Source: Octopus bimaculoides (Eukaryota). Taken from it: 41,443 nucleotides of DNA. Of the stretch, positions 4,431-37,294 are shown piece by piece (the stretch's first letter is position 1; each line of letters begins with the position of its first letter). A program made the translations under genes and the position numbers. Location: assembly GCF_001194135.2 (NCBI RefSeq), contig NC_069000.1:36686336-36727778 (forward strand), read 5' to 3'. Under the pieces are notes generated by a model. That model did no database searches, was not told the DNA's origin, and worked only from the letters and a program-made list of their open reading frames with translations.

Positions 4431-4886
4431 CGACAAGGATGGTAAACTTCACGTATAGAACACAGGATCTTTTTTAGACATTTTGTTGGAAAAGAAAGTG
4501 TGTTTTATATACCATCCAATATGGTATTTTAAATATTGGAAGGTGTTAGGTCAGTGCTTTCTTGACCTTGCCAGTACCAGTAGAATATGGTGACGACAAA
4601 AACAATAAAGTGTGAGTTCTATATTTAAGAGATGAGGAATTATGTACATTATTTACATTTGACGGATATTTGTCCTCAAACAAGTCCAGGACAAATATCT
4701 GTCAAAAATGTAAATAATGTAAATAATGAACAAAGTGTATATACTTTACAATATTTAGTTTTGTATCTCTATTTTTCCAAGTTGAAACCCTATCAATCTC
4801 AGGTCTGCAAATACTAGTGTTGATTTCATTGATTATATCCTTTATCCGTGATTTTGTATCTTAGTGCCATTGTTAGAAATCAATAA

Positions 4887-18594: not shown

Positions 18595-18631
18595 TCAGTA
18601 AGGCTGGTACCAAAGCGACCTCCGGAAGCGA
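18595..18631 (-). CDS. PABPN1: PABPN1 terminal coding exon 7 ([12 protein letters not shown])
   Basis: Strong polypyrimidine tract and CAG acceptor; phase 2 matches exon 6; ends R-x5-PY then TGA, like the WYSPY end of vertebrate PABPN1. Confidence 0.93.
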
Positions 18632-21600
18632 CTGAAATTAAAAAATAAGAAAAGGAAAAAAAAAAAAGTATCATATATGGATANNNNNNNNNNNNNNNNN
18701 NNNNNNNNNNNNNNNNNNNNNNNNNNNNNNNNNNNNNNNNNNNNNNNNNNNNNNNNNNNNNNNNNNNNNNNNNNNNNNNNNNNNNNNNNNNNNNNNNNNN
18801 NNNNNNNNNNNNNNNNNNNNNNNNNNNNNNNNNNNNNNNNNNNNNNNNNNNNNNNNNNNNNNNNNNNNNNNNNNNNNNNNNNNNNNNNNNNNNNNNNNNN
18901 NNNNNNNNNNNNNNNNNNNNNNATATATATAAATAAATAAATAAATACACACATACACACAGGGTGTCCCAGAATTAACTATTTCAGTGAAATTAGACAA
19001 TTTTTTAAAAATTCACTTTTAATTATGTTCATCATCTTTGATATATGTTAAAAGTGTAAAAATTTATAATTTTCCTTTTTTCTCTTTTGATAATTTTATT
19101 TTCATTTTTGATGGATCCCACTTATCTGCAGAGTTGTTTTTCCAATTTGGTTGCAACCATTTTCTCCAACTCCATCCCCAGGATGGAGCAATAAGTTTGG
19201 CTGAACCTAAAGAATGCATTCAATTAGCAGTGCAGGAGGTAACTCCTGAAATGCTTCAAAATGTGGTTCATAACACTAAAGGATAGATTTGAAATTTGCA
19301 TGGATACAGAGCACATGTTGAAAATTTTCAATACAGTTTTGACATAAGATTTATAAATCCATTTGTTTTGGTATCACAATGATTTAATAAACATAAAATT
19401 GTCAGTTTTTTTTTTTTTTAATTGCCTATTTCATTGAAATAGACAGTTAAATTCTGAGAGACCCTGTACATGTATAAACATTTTTCACATATATTCACAT
19501 CAGCACAATTCACAAAGTCATTCACCTGGATGCTGTGGGTGCCTTGGAAACAAAATGACAGTTGCCATAAACTGTGGAGATTCACATGGTACAATCCTGC
19601 CTGAAGCTTCACTTTGAAAGATGGTGTATGTATAATCTTTATCTGAAGAAGACCCAAACAACAAAGTGTCAATAGCAATCTCAAAAATATTAAAAATTTT
19701 AATTATTGATTGAAATGTCACATCTGGTTATGATTGACTTATTATTTAAATGCCAAATTTAAGCACACGAAAAAATTAAGGCAATGAAACAGCAGGAAAA
19801 AAAAAATATATAAGTAATAATAATTTAGGCGCGAAATGAATATTTTTGAAGAGCTTTCCTCTTGACAATGTTGTTTGGGTCTTAATTTGAACTTGAAATC
19901 ATTGTTGTTCCAGCTTAAAGGAACTAAAGATATATGCTATCAGTCTATAGAGAGCCAAGTAGAATACTCACTATTACAGTAAACTTTAGCAATCCATGTA
20001 AATAAGAGAACAAAAGATTTCAAGTCCAAATGCTGTTAACCATCTGCTAACAAATTAACTTGGCAGTTTACTTCAGAGCAACGGAGGCCCGTAATCATAT
20101 TTGAGCACCAAAAGCAGTTTGGAAATATACAAATATTTTAGAAATAAATTAAGAGTATCTTTGTTACAGAGAAGAAAAAATATATATTTAAAATCGCCAA
20201 AAATTATTCAAAAATTTCCAATAGTGACTGCAGCCTTAATCAGTTATTAAAGTTAGGATTATACACACTATATAATCCAAAATTAAACTGTTTTTAAATA
20301 CAATTATAAACTTTTATAATAATAAAAAATAGTTTCACATACAATTTTAAGATACTCTTAAGACAGGAAATGAACTGTCAATATACATATTCATATGGTT
20401 GTTTATTAGCACTGATAAACTGTATATGCATATGTATATTTTTGTGTGAATATATATGAAGTGTATGTAAATATGAGTGTCTGTGTGTGTATACAGTCAG
20501 TGATAATGCAATGATGAAACAAAAAGCAAATCATACTTGCCTTGGACAGTTGAAAAATAAAGCACACATAACAAAAAATATATTACACTGACCTGTATCT
20601 AGGTCTAGATCTTGGTGCATAAGGATAATATCCAGATCCCATGCCACCTCTGAAATAACTCCCTCGTCGGGAACGCCCTCTGCCACGGTTTGTAGTGCTG
20701 ATACCAGGCCTATTAGTTCTCTTAGCCATTACCTTTTTGACAAAGTAGATAAAAAAAAAAACAAGAAAAAAATTGAAATGTTCTTGTAGTTTCTTTATGA
20801 ATAAGAATGTAAAGGAGTCCAGGACTGCTAAAATGGCCAAAACCATATTTTGCAAAATAAAAAAAAAAAGGAGAAAAATGAAAAAGTTACCAATAATGAT
20901 AAATGCCTTACTGAAGGAATTTATAAAAAAAAGTAAAGAAAAAAAAAATTAAAAAGTTACCGATAATGATAGATATCTTAATGAAGAAACTTAGAAAAAA
21001 AAGAAAAAAATGAAAAGGAAAAAAAGAAGAGAAAATGAAAGAAAAAAGAGCAGGGATGGGTGTAAAAAGAAAAAAATATAACTGAATCGACTTGGGTTAG
21101 TCAACATTTTTTTTAGGGTCCTACTACTCACCTGTACTCTGAAAGAAAAAAAATTCTTATAGAACAATGAGAAAAAATGCATTAAAAAAAATTTCATCAC
21201 ACTTTTTTTCTTTACCTTTTTTCTTTCCTCTTGCTATTTTTTCAATATTTTCTGGAAGAATTTTTTTATGCCTTTAAGTATTGAATATATATATAAATAT
21301 ATATACTGTTCATCCNNNNNNNNNNNNNNNNNNNNNNNNNNNNNNNNNNNNNNNNNNNNNNNNNNNNNNNNNNNNNNNNNNNNNNNNNNNNNNNNNNNNN
21401 NNNNNNNNNNNNNNNNNNNNNNNNNNNNNNNNNNNNNNNNNNNNNNNNNNNNNNNNNNNNNNNNGTTTTTAATTAAAAGCATAGCAAAATATGTGGGATA
21501 GCTTCTGCATCCTAAGTCTTCTAGTACATCTAAACTGACTGATGGAATTTCTGGAAATGGAAGTAGCAGCCATTGATGCTCAAGACACAAAACGTTAGTG

Positions 21601-24600
21601 CCACCTGAGCTTAGATCAATATCAAACACACTGCCAGAATTACAAGAGGCCATGTCTGTAGAGTAGTTACAACTGGGGTTATGTTAAAACTAAGGCTTAC
21701 CTTCAACGTGTGGCACTTCTGCGGCAGACATCCAACACCAATTCCACAATTTTACACAAGTAGCTGGTATTAGAAAACGCCCCATTTTCATTTCGCCATA
21801 ATAATTTTTTTTCCAGAAATTTTTTAAGATTTTTTGCTTTTTTTCATTTTTTTCTAACTTTTTTCTAGCTTTTTTTTTGTATCTTAATTTTTTTAGCAAA
21901 TTTTTTTTCCTGCTTTTTTAAATTTTTTTTTCAAGTTAATTTCTTATGTTGGAGCAATCTCATGATACCAGTATTTCTCCTCTTGAAATGCAAAGCCTCA
22001 TCTGCAAGCCAACCTGTTCTAAACAAAATGGCCGAAAGATCAAATACTGACAGGAAAGCTTACAAAAATACAAAATGTATATATCTTTTTTTCTCTTCTT
22101 TCTTTTTAGGATCTGTCGGCACCTCAGTGTATACATACTAACATGATGGGATGATCATGTATGTAAAGAGGCATACAGTGCAGAGTTAGAGATAAAATAG
22201 AACACAAGATCTTGGAATGTAATAGAATTTCAAAAACAGCATATTTAAGCATTGATGTTACAATTCACTACAAAAATGACAAAAAAAAAAAGAAAAGAAA
22301 AGAAAAAGTTCAGTTAGAACTCTGAGCATCCAATATAAATTAGACGCTATTGCAGGTAACTCGATAGCTGACAACTTAATTATATAATCGTTCATTTTTT
22401 AAGTGCAATGTAAATCATGGTTAAATAGCCAAGCAATACTTCCAAGATCTCTGTTTGTTAATTACATACACAATGTCCAATCTATCTAGCCTTAAAGATA
22501 AGGCACCATTCTTCAATATCTTTTCTTTGGTATGTATTTTTTTAAGTAAACTTTTTCCCCAACCTTATGGTGGGTGACTCCCGCTACATTAAAAGGAAAA
22601 TTTAATATCTCAACTAGTAACAGCTATATTAGAAACTAGAATGGAGTTATTGTTGTGTGTGAAAGGTTTTAACCCCCAACCTCCTTTTATTTCACTGGTT
22701 TAAGTGAAGTCAATGCAATGATGCAGTTTACTTACCTTGATTTGTCTTGCTCGAAAGAGGGACTCATCTAAAGCCATAGCAGTTCCTACTGAGTCTTTAT
22801 CAGCAAATTCCACATATGCAAACCTAAAATTTACAAAGACTCAAATCACGAACAACACACCAAGAAAGTATATTAAAAAAAAAAACACTTTTTAATAAGT
22901 GAATATCTATGTCCTGGTTTTCAATTTCACTTATTTCCAATAATAGAAAGAATACCAATGGGAACAACAAAAATGGTTTTCCCCACTCTCATCACCTAAC
23001 GTCCACTTTTCCAATGCATTCATGGGACAGATGGAATTATCTGAAGTAGATTTTTTACAGCCACACACCCTTCCTGTTTCCAAAAAAGGTAGTATTTTCC
23101 CATAGCCAGAAAGGTTTCCAGATAATTGAAAACAACCTCGAATTTTTGACAATTTAGAACCATTATGTGAAGGGCACAAATACACATATATAGACAACTA
23201 TATATATATATATACGACAAGCTTCTTTCAGTTTCCATCTACCAATTGCACTCACAAAGTTTCCATTGGCCTGGAGCTGAAGTAGCAGACACTTGCCCAA
23301 AGTGTCACATAATGGGACTGAACCCAAGACCACATGGTTGGGGAGCAACCACACAGCCATGCCTACTCCCTAGTGGGATATAACTGTAGAATTCTCCATC
23401 CAAACAAGCTTCACACAAGACATCAACCACTATTTTAGTATTGTTTATTGGCCGTTTTTTCTAATTTACTAATGGAATATATATATTGACTGGACATCAC
23501 AATTCCATAGAAATAAAAACCAATACTTACCCTTTTGGGTGTCCACTGTATTTGTCACACAAGATAGTTACTCTGTTAACTGAACCACAACCATGAAAAT
23601 GTTGTTCTAGTTCTTCAGCAGTGGCACCATAATCAACCTTTAAATAATAATAATAATAACAACAACAACAACTCCAAAGTGCAGAATATTAAGCAAGTTG
23701 ATATGGAGGACTAAATCAATTAATAAATTATCACTATTAATCTGGTATAGAAAACTGAGATGGCATTTAATAAAAATAACCATTTGTGTGTACCATACAC
23801 ACTACTGATAGACCAGTCGCAGCAGTATTTGTCACAGTGGTAGAACCTGTTAAGGTTCTTGTGTTAAAAACAAGGCAGAGAGTGGTGCAAATGTTCCAGC
23901 CACATCTGGCATTCGCAATGGTTGCTGCCAGGACAAACTTTTATCTCTCTGAAATTGTGATTTTAACACAGCAGGACTATAAGAGTAAATACTGCAGTAA
24001 CTGGTCTATCGACAGTGTGTATACAAGTATGATAATCATTATTATTAAATAATAACTTCTTATATAAGTACAAAGTCAAGATTGTTGGAGAACAGTCAAT
24101 TAGATCCAATTCCCAGTACTTGTACTAATAAATACTATTATATATATATCAAGATTTACTTACATTACCAACAAATATAGATCGCTGGTCAGCTTCCATT
24201 TTCTCTTCAAACGTAGGAAAATTTGGTGCTAAAATAAAATACATTGATCTTAATATAATCAATTTATAATAGTCATGTACAATTAATGGATTAAAAGTTG
24301 AAAGTACATAAAAAAGATTTTGATTAGATGGACTCTAGCCACTGCAAACATATTTGGGTAAAGTCTCATATAACAGACATCATGCCAACAGAACTGCTTT
24401 TGCTGTAGTCATCACTAGAATCTACAGATATTCATGGAAAACAACTAAAATATTATGGGAGACAAATGAATGTTTAACATTTAATTAATGCAGGGGTCAT
24501 TAAAAAAAGCTAATGCAACAAGTGGGGAAAAATGTATAGCATTCATGTTTAGATCTTCTCAGTATATGCTACACCATACTTAGAGACATAAAATATTTTG

Positions 24601-36112: not shown

Positions 36113-37294
36113 TTAAGCTACAATCACAACGTATTGATTTCATTCACCAGCACAATTCATTTCGAAAGGGCATGAGGGTATGTGACATTCACAACTTTCT
36201 CAAGGGCATTTCTTAGTTTCTAGAAAAGTGATTTCAAATTTTGGCACAAGGCCAGCAATTTCAGAGGTAAGTTGAACACATCAACTCCAGTGTTCAACTG
36301 GTACATATTTTACTGACCCACCACCATTGAAAAGATGAAAGGCAAAGTTGACCTTGGCAAAATTTGAACTCGCGATGTAAAGACTGAGAAAAATGCTGTT
36401 AAGCATCTACTATAATACTCCAGTGTTTTTTCCTGTCACAACATATGAATGAGAAAGGAAGGGGTGAAAAAAAAAAATCAAACAGTGTTTCAACACTAAG
36501 TATATGTGTGTGTATGTAAAAAGGAAGGTATGTGAATGTGTGTGTGTGTGCAATGGAAGTGGGATGGTGATATAGTAATACTCTTGTGTTTTTCTCCGTC
36601 ACAACATATGAATGAGAAAGGAAGAGGTGATGGCAAAATGTAAATGTTTATATGTGTGAGGGAAGATTCAATGCTGAAAAGAAAAAATCAAATAGTGTTT
36701 CAACTCAGGGGTGAGTATATGTGTGTTTGTGTGTGTACAAAGGAAGTATGTGAATGTCTGCATGTGTGATCATTATCTTATTTATATACATAAAAGGAGC
36801 TGGCCTAGTGCCGTCAAAAATGATGGCTAATTGTAGTATTCCATATATAAATAAGATCAATAATAATCGAACATACAAATATTTACATACTTCCCTTGTA
36901 CACGCTCTCATATATACTCATACAGAGTTGAAACGCTGTTTGATTTTTCTTTTCAGCTTTTGTCATCACCCCTTATTCATCTATCACCTCTCCCTTTCTC
37001 ATTCATGTGTCGTGACAGAGAAAAACACAAGAGTATTATTATAGTAAATACTACAATTAGCCATCATTTTTGATGGCATGGGGCCAGCTAGTAATAATCA
37101 ATAACTCTTTCTACTATAGGCACACAGCCTGAAACAAATGAACAGAATTGGCGTCAATGACAAATCAAAGCCCTTTTTTAAATTTGTCTCACCAACAGTT
37201 CAGCTCAAGTTTTTTAATGATTGCCTGAAACATAAAGAGAAATTTTAATTGGGGATTTTCAATTGAGAAACATCCAACACTGATTATTAATTAA

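Follow-up and report, generated by a model that had tools for sequence, protein, structure and literature searches.

The stretch of Octopus bimaculoides contig NC_069000.1 analysed here (positions 36,686,336 to 36,727,778 of the forward strand; 41,443 nt, hereafter the window) carries the PABPN1 gene on its minus strand, and the last intron of this gene contains a cassette exon preceded by a predicted long-range RNA hairpin. Five coding blocks on the minus strand were matched by human PABPN1 in a tblastn search against the window, and the encoded protein is practically identical to Octopus PABPN1 entries, listed as "polyadenylate-binding protein 2", the canonical form of 214 amino acids being XP_014776876.1 / XP_029647327.1. 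Exon 6 ends in phase 2 with ...AGA TAC AG and is followed by a donor GT at 20592-20591 that reads gtcagt. The last exon starts at 18631 and supplies the final 12 residues of the protein, ending in PY; these residues hold the R-X5-PY core of the transportin-type nuclear localisation signal (NLS). An assembly gap at 18684-18922 is counted within the 1961 nt of the terminal intron. The coordinates of all features discussed are collected in Table 1.

Three raw paired-end RNA-seq runs from the same species, with 150-nt reads, show the cassette to be a real exon, with reads at exactly the two junctions that an earlier note on this DNA had predicted from the letters alone and with CAG|GTGAAT as its donor. 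Junction 20593->19642, which joins exon 6 to the cassette, was crossed by 250, 264 and 212 reads in the three runs, and junction 19526->18631, which joins the cassette to the last exon, by 123, 79 and 110; the corresponding counts for the skipping junction 20593->18631 were 91, 56 and 60. Because acceptor-side and donor-side counts are unequal, inclusion is stated as a range, 57-82% by junction reads, set by the junction chosen. The imbalance (250 vs 123) is most likely a mapping effect, arising from 150-nt reads that span both ends of a 117-nt exon. Read depth over the cassette reaches ~80% of exon 6 depth. Estimates based on unitig depth in independent older studies gave inclusion of 67-71%, 62-64% and 74%, and of 68% in a second species, and the included form also turned up when two more Octopus-like organisms were assembled. 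Most mRNA is of the cassette form, which accounts for about two thirds of mature mRNAs and for 60-80% across the samples and studies examined. The earlier note had pictured a poison exon gated by RNA structure; a gated exon of rare use does not fit such inclusion in material with intact nonsense-mediated decay (NMD). No read-through or polyadenylation past the cassette donor was detected, depth directly downstream being 0-2; apparent coverage at 19405-19489 was rejected as read-through, since it arises from an adjacent repeat and A-run.

The junction between exon 6 and the cassette reads AG|A TAA, with the stop TAA at 19641-19639. The protein of the cassette isoform ends in ...RPRYR and loses the final 12 residues with their R-X5-PY core, and the remaining 113 nt of the cassette become 3' untranslated region (3' UTR) together with the last exon. 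This stop precedes the junction between the cassette and the last exon by 113 nt, i.e. by more than the 50-55 nt of the NMD rule, so that the immediate stop more than 50 nt before the last junction, as proposed earlier, is borne out by measurement. The isoform is already annotated in Octopus vulgaris as CAI9737415.1 ("isoform X2", 203 amino acids, ending in ...RPRYR; UniRef, n = 4, Octopus), so that the form as such is on record, whereas the earlier note knew of no such element in PABPN1. In searches of the accessible literature that combined PABPN1 or cephalopods with poison exons or unproductive splicing, no paper describing the cassette surfaced; it is found in public annotation, yet it is apparently undescribed in the literature.

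In transcripts of four other cephalopods, obtained from one JGI metatranscriptome and three SRA studies (85-90% protein identity), the cassette likewise links exon 6 to the last exon, and the products all end in RYR; de novo assembly gave this included form in all other cephalopod transcriptomes recovered. In the four transcripts, nucleotide identity to Octopus was 93, 96, 83 and 91% for the cassette vs 82, 81, 79 and 83% for coding exon 6, and in the genome of Argonauta hians it was 115/118 vs 120/143. Overall, the cassette is 83-97% identical across cephalopods, compared with 79-84% for coding exon 6, and both ATAAAG at its start and the stop are invariant in six cephalopod sequences. To judge from these alignments, the cassette sequence is under strong constraint. 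Its length varies among cephalopods (117, 118, 118 and ~108 nt, not all multiples of three), which indicates that the remainder of the cassette is not read as protein. No supported internal structure was found in the cassette, the predicted folding being weak and its covariation term positive. Neither the cassette nor the hairpin arms showed similarity to the terminal introns of Aplysia or Ostrea, and the module is therefore cephalopod-specific by sequence similarity. In the Argonauta hians assembly, the PABPN1 locus occurs on two contigs (L002 and L003), identical over the stem and cassette and with similar neighbours, which may be haplotigs or a recent duplication.

Upstream of the cassette, in the same intron, lies an inverted repeat whose 15-nt arms, AAGACCCAAACAACA and TGTTGTTTGGGTCTT, are perfectly complementary and separated by 205 nt. 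Beyond a 1x3-nt internal loop, six more base pairs join TGTCAA (19867-19862) to TTGACA (19672-19667), and both the 15-bp stem and its 6-bp continuation lie where the earlier note had placed them. The two-strand duplex energy is -29.3 kcal/mol, that of the core alone being -22.5. Under a first-order Markov null, 0.04 perfect inverted repeats of this class (at least 15 nt, within 400 nt, not of low complexity) are expected per 40 kb; five other loci of the same class are present, so that the class is over-represented in the window. The arm 15-mer itself occurs at these two sites only in the window, even when up to two mismatches are allowed. A genomic contig of 1855 nt from the same species, with a depth of 11.8, spans 19347-20250 without differences. 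In the same-species assembly no extra genomic alignments fall on the arms, whereas depth at 19300-19459 nearby reaches the thousands.

Table 1. Features of the PABPN1 terminal intron and its flanking exons, in window coordinates and in order of transcription
Feature	Position	Strand	Details and basis
PABPN1 exon 6	20732-20593	minus	tblastn to human PABPN1, junction reads, protein entries
Intron 6, terminal in the canonical mRNA	18632..20592	minus	1961 nt; skipping junction 20593->18631
Conserved 29-nt island GTTCAAATTAAGACCCAAACAACATTGTC	19864..19892	minus	contains the 5' arm core 19869-19883 and the start of the extension helix 19862-19867
5' arm AAGACCCAAACAACA	19883-19869	minus	15/15 complementary to the 3' arm
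Hairpin loop, ~190 nt	19674..19861	minus	inner 11-bp helix 19839-19849/19681-19691
3' arm	19649..19672	minus	TTGACA (19667-19672), CTT bulge, polypyrimidine tract TGTTGTTTGGGTCTT (19649-19663)
Cassette 3' splice site CTTCAG	19643..19648	minus	AG at 19644-19643; just outside the stem; junction 20593->19642
Cassette exon	19526..19642	minus	117 nt; junction reads
Cassette 5' splice site GTGAAT and conserved intronic flank downstream	19500..19525	minus	junction 19526->18631; conservation
Last exon, coding start and TGA	18595..18631	minus	encodes the R-X5-PY tail

The intron of Argonauta aligns continuously with 20163-19493, and identity over the upstream intron is 58% overall. The longest perfect Octopus-Argonauta run, of 72 nt, covers the 3' arm and the start of the exon, and the second-longest run in the upstream intron is the 29-nt block 19892-19864 that holds the 5' arm; the next measures 18 nt. 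Both arms are 100% identical between Octopus and Argonauta, and the loop between them is 69% identical, with indels of 5 to 15 nt. Nor do the arms differ in two to three close Octopus relatives, at 97-98% identity, a distance that is uninformative. The long-range helix appears in both the minimum free energy and the centroid folds of Octopus (-49.6 kcal/mol, z -2.75) and of Argonauta (-52.0, z -2.5). In the consensus of the two, the base hairpin extends to ~33 bp with no broken pairs and with two one-sided compatible changes (U-G to U-A and A-U to G-U). With inclusion reads present, the arms outside any repeat family and both arms of the pairing kept in Argonauta, none of the outcomes that the earlier note had named as refuting came about. 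Elsewhere in the upstream intron, Octopus and Argonauta share without a mismatch the 18-nt block CCTCCGTTGCTCTGAAGT at 20070-20087. Within it, UCUGAAG is complementary to CUUCAGA of the cassette 3' splice site over no more than 7 bp, and the block has in addition some likeness to a 5' splice site (AAG|GUAAAC).

The predicted stem coincides with the signals of the cassette acceptor. Between 18 and 45 nt upstream of the AG, the one match to yUnAy is UUGAC; its A, at 19669, falls within the 6-bp extension, and the 15-bp core takes up the whole polypyrimidine tract, leaving the AG 6 nt outside the helix. We propose that PABPN1 of coleoids has conserved a cassette together with a hairpin that competes for its acceptor signals and so sets the isoform ratio, a joint reading to which we give an even chance; as far as the sequence goes, the conserved hairpin probably tunes cassette use. 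Hairpin formation would compete with the binding of SF1, U2AF and U2 at the cassette branch point and pyrimidine tract, and this competition would shift splicing from the cassette towards the strong downstream acceptor; the share of full-length mRNA relative to truncated or unproductive mRNA would be set in this way. Since both arms lie upstream of the exon, the helix could form once the tract has been transcribed. The 2:1 splicing outcome suggests partial occlusion by the stem. On the predicted folds, the stem may well form in vivo and would repress rather than promote the acceptor; we further infer that the isoform ratio may be regulated, e.g. by PABPN1 itself, and that the cassette mRNA may be the less productive one.

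Several results weigh against this proposal. Compensatory double substitutions, a line of support envisaged in the earlier note, number zero between Octopus and Argonauta, the only informative distance, where the arms are invariant; given that invariance, their absence bears on pairing in neither direction. A splice signal such as the 3' arm would be expected to be conserved anyway. Most transcripts use the cassette acceptor, which leaves room for partial repression only, and the stem, if it is a gate, is mostly open. Across the samples seen, inclusion by unitig depth is nearly constant, at 62-74%, with no sign of regulation. No alternative partner was found for the 5' arm, the next best reaching -14.2 vs -29.8 kcal/mol; the alternatives for the 3' arm in exon 6 are moderate and G/U-rich (-21 to -22 kcal/mol) and were judged not meaningful. 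As no helix competes for the 5' arm, the RNA gives no sign of two alternative states for the structure switch put forward in the earlier note. Lastly, the position of the stop fits the NMD rule, yet efficient NMD of the cassette mRNA is doubtful, because a steady-state abundance of 60-80% with NMD intact is unusual.

That abundance also speaks for the strongest alternative, in which the cassette is a productive last-coding alternative that yields a PABPN1 without the PY-NLS (...RPRYR), possibly more cytoplasmic, with the conserved non-coding remainder serving as a 3'-UTR regulatory element. We regard this as a serious possibility that falls somewhat short of an even chance, and it is compatible with a stem that tunes the ratio. 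It is further favoured by the assembly of the included form in every other cephalopod transcriptome recovered, by the listing of the cassette isoform as coding in public annotation, and by comparison with the poison exon of BRD2, which is only 16-20% included with NMD active and 40% without NMD (PMC10789245). Set against it are a stop 113 nt before a junction, which is the classical NMD-eliciting configuration, and the conservation of what the short form lacks: Octopus and Argonauta agree in all 12 lost residues, and where coding begins in the last exon the JGI transcript (L001) matches at 38/38 nt, which places the long form under strong selection. A different alternative concerns the stem itself, whose complementarity could be the relic of an ancient inverted duplication, the helix being functionless and each arm being kept for what it does as a single strand: the 3' arm would supply branch point and polypyrimidine tract, and the 5' arm a CA/A-rich intronic splicing enhancer or silencer. 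This fits with the lack of covariation, with the usual conservation of the flanks of conserved alternative exons, with a 5' arm that makes a plausible protein-binding CA-rich motif, and with an acceptor that is efficiently used despite the predicted stem. We nevertheless consider it unlikely, as 15/15 plus 6 bp have remained perfect in both arms while the loop fell to 69% identity, which is hard to obtain without selection on pairing, and as all substitutions and indels in the extended hairpin are either unpaired or compatible with pairing.

The hairpin might instead promote cassette use, either by looping out ~190 nt and bringing upstream elements or a distal branch point near the AG, or by hiding a G/U-rich silencer that lies within the weak pyrimidine tract; alternatively, it could be a double-stranded RNA (dsRNA) platform for ADAR or another dsRNA-binding protein. 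In favour of such roles are the high inclusion, although the pyrimidine tract is interrupted by G and the acceptor downstream is much stronger, and the extended hairpin of ~33 bp. Cephalopods, moreover, edit RNA extensively. We think these roles improbable all the same. Reading by eye revealed no yUnAy directly upstream of the 5' arm, the scripted search having covered the 90 nt before the acceptor, and intronic RNA contigs across both arms carried no differences, which argues against majority editing there (at an intron depth of 1-5, low-level editing is below reach). In the three RNA-seq runs, no A>G change of at least 2% occurred at the stop codon or in the duplex-adjacent exon start; the sole A>G site in the cassette, 19598 (T>C on the plus strand), reached 3.7%, 9.2% and 2.5% in the three runs, is consistent with weak adenosine-to-inosine editing, and lies outside the long-range duplex. 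The opening of the stem by editing, entertained in the earlier note, accordingly receives no support from these runs. Finally, the inverted repeat could represent the terminal repeats of an exonised transposon resembling a miniature inverted-repeat transposable element (MITE), given its MITE-like size of ~235 bp and the five other perfect inverted-repeat loci in the window. This is the least probable explanation by far: coverage is even at the single-copy level, the arms attract no further genomic contigs, an alignable orthologue of the element exists in Argonauta, and no flanking target-site duplication was seen on reading the sequence. Single-copy depth and orthology effectively refute a recent or multi-copy transposon origin, in agreement with the earlier view of the repeat as free of transposon signatures; a very ancient and now unique transposon may lie behind it, but would leave the upkeep of both arms unexplained.

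The terminal intron of PABPN1 is a known site of control in mammals. According to Bergeron et al. (2015), as reported in PMC5602073, mammalian PABPN1 binds its own 3' UTR, whereupon the terminal intron is retained and the RNA undergoes nuclear exosome decay. At a mammalian locus, exon 6 ends in ...GTC TAC AG|gtcagg and the last exon encodes GRARATSWYSPY, so that gene and intron are the same as in Octopus, with identical position and phase (phase 2, 12 codons before the stop, PY end); Aplysia and Ostrea PABPN1 share the position of this intron. The two systems are also alike in that an alternative fate of the terminal intron yields an mRNA unable to make the full-length protein. They differ in that the mammalian intron is retained whole and the RNA degraded in the nucleus, whereas the octopus transcript includes a spliced cassette of 117 nt. 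Retention of the whole intron was considered for the octopus and rejected, as it amounts to ~1% of exon depth (intron depth 1-5 vs 250-300 in exons). Cephalopods employ the same ancient intron as mammals, via a cassette instead of retention. A non-cephalopod transcript with a different C-terminus was examined as a counterpart of the cassette and set aside as simple intron retention. This mollusc transcript (SRR26439019; L012:803-1509) keeps the whole ~707-nt terminal PABPN1 intron (...CGGGG|GTATGT...), which gives a C-terminus of ...GYVATNGA, an anecdotal parallel to the mammalian retention.

The closest parallels for the combination of cassette and stem are BRD2 exon 3b and BRD3 exon 5b, poison exons controlled by conserved complementary regions, in which disruption of the pairing raises inclusion (PMC10789245). 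They share with the octopus a highly conserved cassette that introduces a premature termination codon, together with conserved long-range complementary intronic segments, and their repressive direction is that proposed here. In BRD2, however, the complementary regions lie in both flanking introns, whereas both octopus arms are upstream and one of them is the branch point and tract; inclusion of the BRD2 exon with NMD active also contrasts with 60-80% in the octopus, whose stem is a predicted one. For occlusion of an acceptor, the nearest precedent is the stem-loop of cTNT intron 4, which competes with U2AF65 (Warf et al., 2009, as cited in PMC7901844). On that account, a single-stranded 3' end of the upstream intron allows U2AF65 to bind and leads to inclusion, and a base-paired one leads to skipping. 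In cTNT the hairpin is local and short, and MBNL1 stabilises it at YGCY motifs; the octopus stem is a 15+6-bp closing stem across a loop of ~190 nt, any trans-factor of which is hypothetical. The ultraconserved poison exons of SR and hnRNP genes (Lareau et al., 2007, as cited in PMC5602073) offer a further likeness, in that the gene encodes an RNA-binding protein and the non-coding cassette is more conserved than the neighbouring coding exon. By comparison with these, the octopus cassette has a steady-state abundance far above what is typical, and its NMD dependence and auto- or cross-regulation are hypothetical.

Further observations concern the surroundings of the cassette. In the downstream half of the terminal intron, 19300-19459 is a high-copy dispersed repeat, with genomic contig depth in the thousands in three organisms; it is also expressed in RNA assemblies, and the adjoining A-run at 19406-19419 draws spurious poly(A)-like alignments. 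RNA reads and contigs run from 18946 to 19406 across 31-33 additional letters and from 18668 to 19407 across 30; near the gap and repeat (18640-19410), the sequenced individuals thus depart from the assembly, by a structural variant or a mis-assembly. The other perfect inverted repeats of at least 15 nt within 400 nt are located at 4645/4707, 30851/30993, 36814/37059, 37291/37702 and 37332/37645. The pair at 36814/37059 has arms of 27 nt ~220 nt apart, and three of the five loci have an arm spacing of 200-400 nt, recalling MITEs.

Other alternative forms were seen at PABPN1 loci. In intron 5 (20900-22850), exon 5 is at times spliced to a minor alternative exon through junction 22736->22018 (11, 5 and 3 reads in the three runs), which matches an annotated Octopus isoform with a distinct C-terminus. 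The segment 21494-22747 is covered at ~15-25% of exon depth, far above the terminal intron, which suggests intron-5 retention or an internal 3' end. An analogous intron-5 form, ending in ...QIKVSGILELLVASQT, occurs in other cephalopods (L008-L011). At the PABPN1 locus of Ostrea edulis, the end of exon 5 is repeated in degenerate form (TTSCCNSESLFWGKQIKV; L017:9602-9655) just downstream of the real exon.

A wider interpretation, which we offer as speculation and hold to be rather unlikely, is that the last intron of PABPN1 has served as a homeostatic node since ancient bilaterians, with a turnover of mechanism that left retention in mammals and a hairpin-gated cassette in coleoids, the hairpin acting as the sensor. 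A trans-acting factor, be it PABPN1, a helicase or ADAR, would open or stabilise the hairpin and thereby set the amount of NLS-competent PABPN1, and the cassette mRNA would be either a stable reservoir or the template of a cytoplasmic, PY-less isoform. PABPN1 dosage is tightly controlled in mammals via this same intron; if cephalopods have indeed arrived at a different, deeply conserved solution, the regulatory position would be older than the mechanism. The hairpin would then also provide a model, ~240 nt long and easily mutated, of structure-controlled 3' splice-site choice outside vertebrates and insects. As the cassette form is the majority, either these animals make mostly PY-less PABPN1, or most of the output of the gene is held as non-productive RNA.

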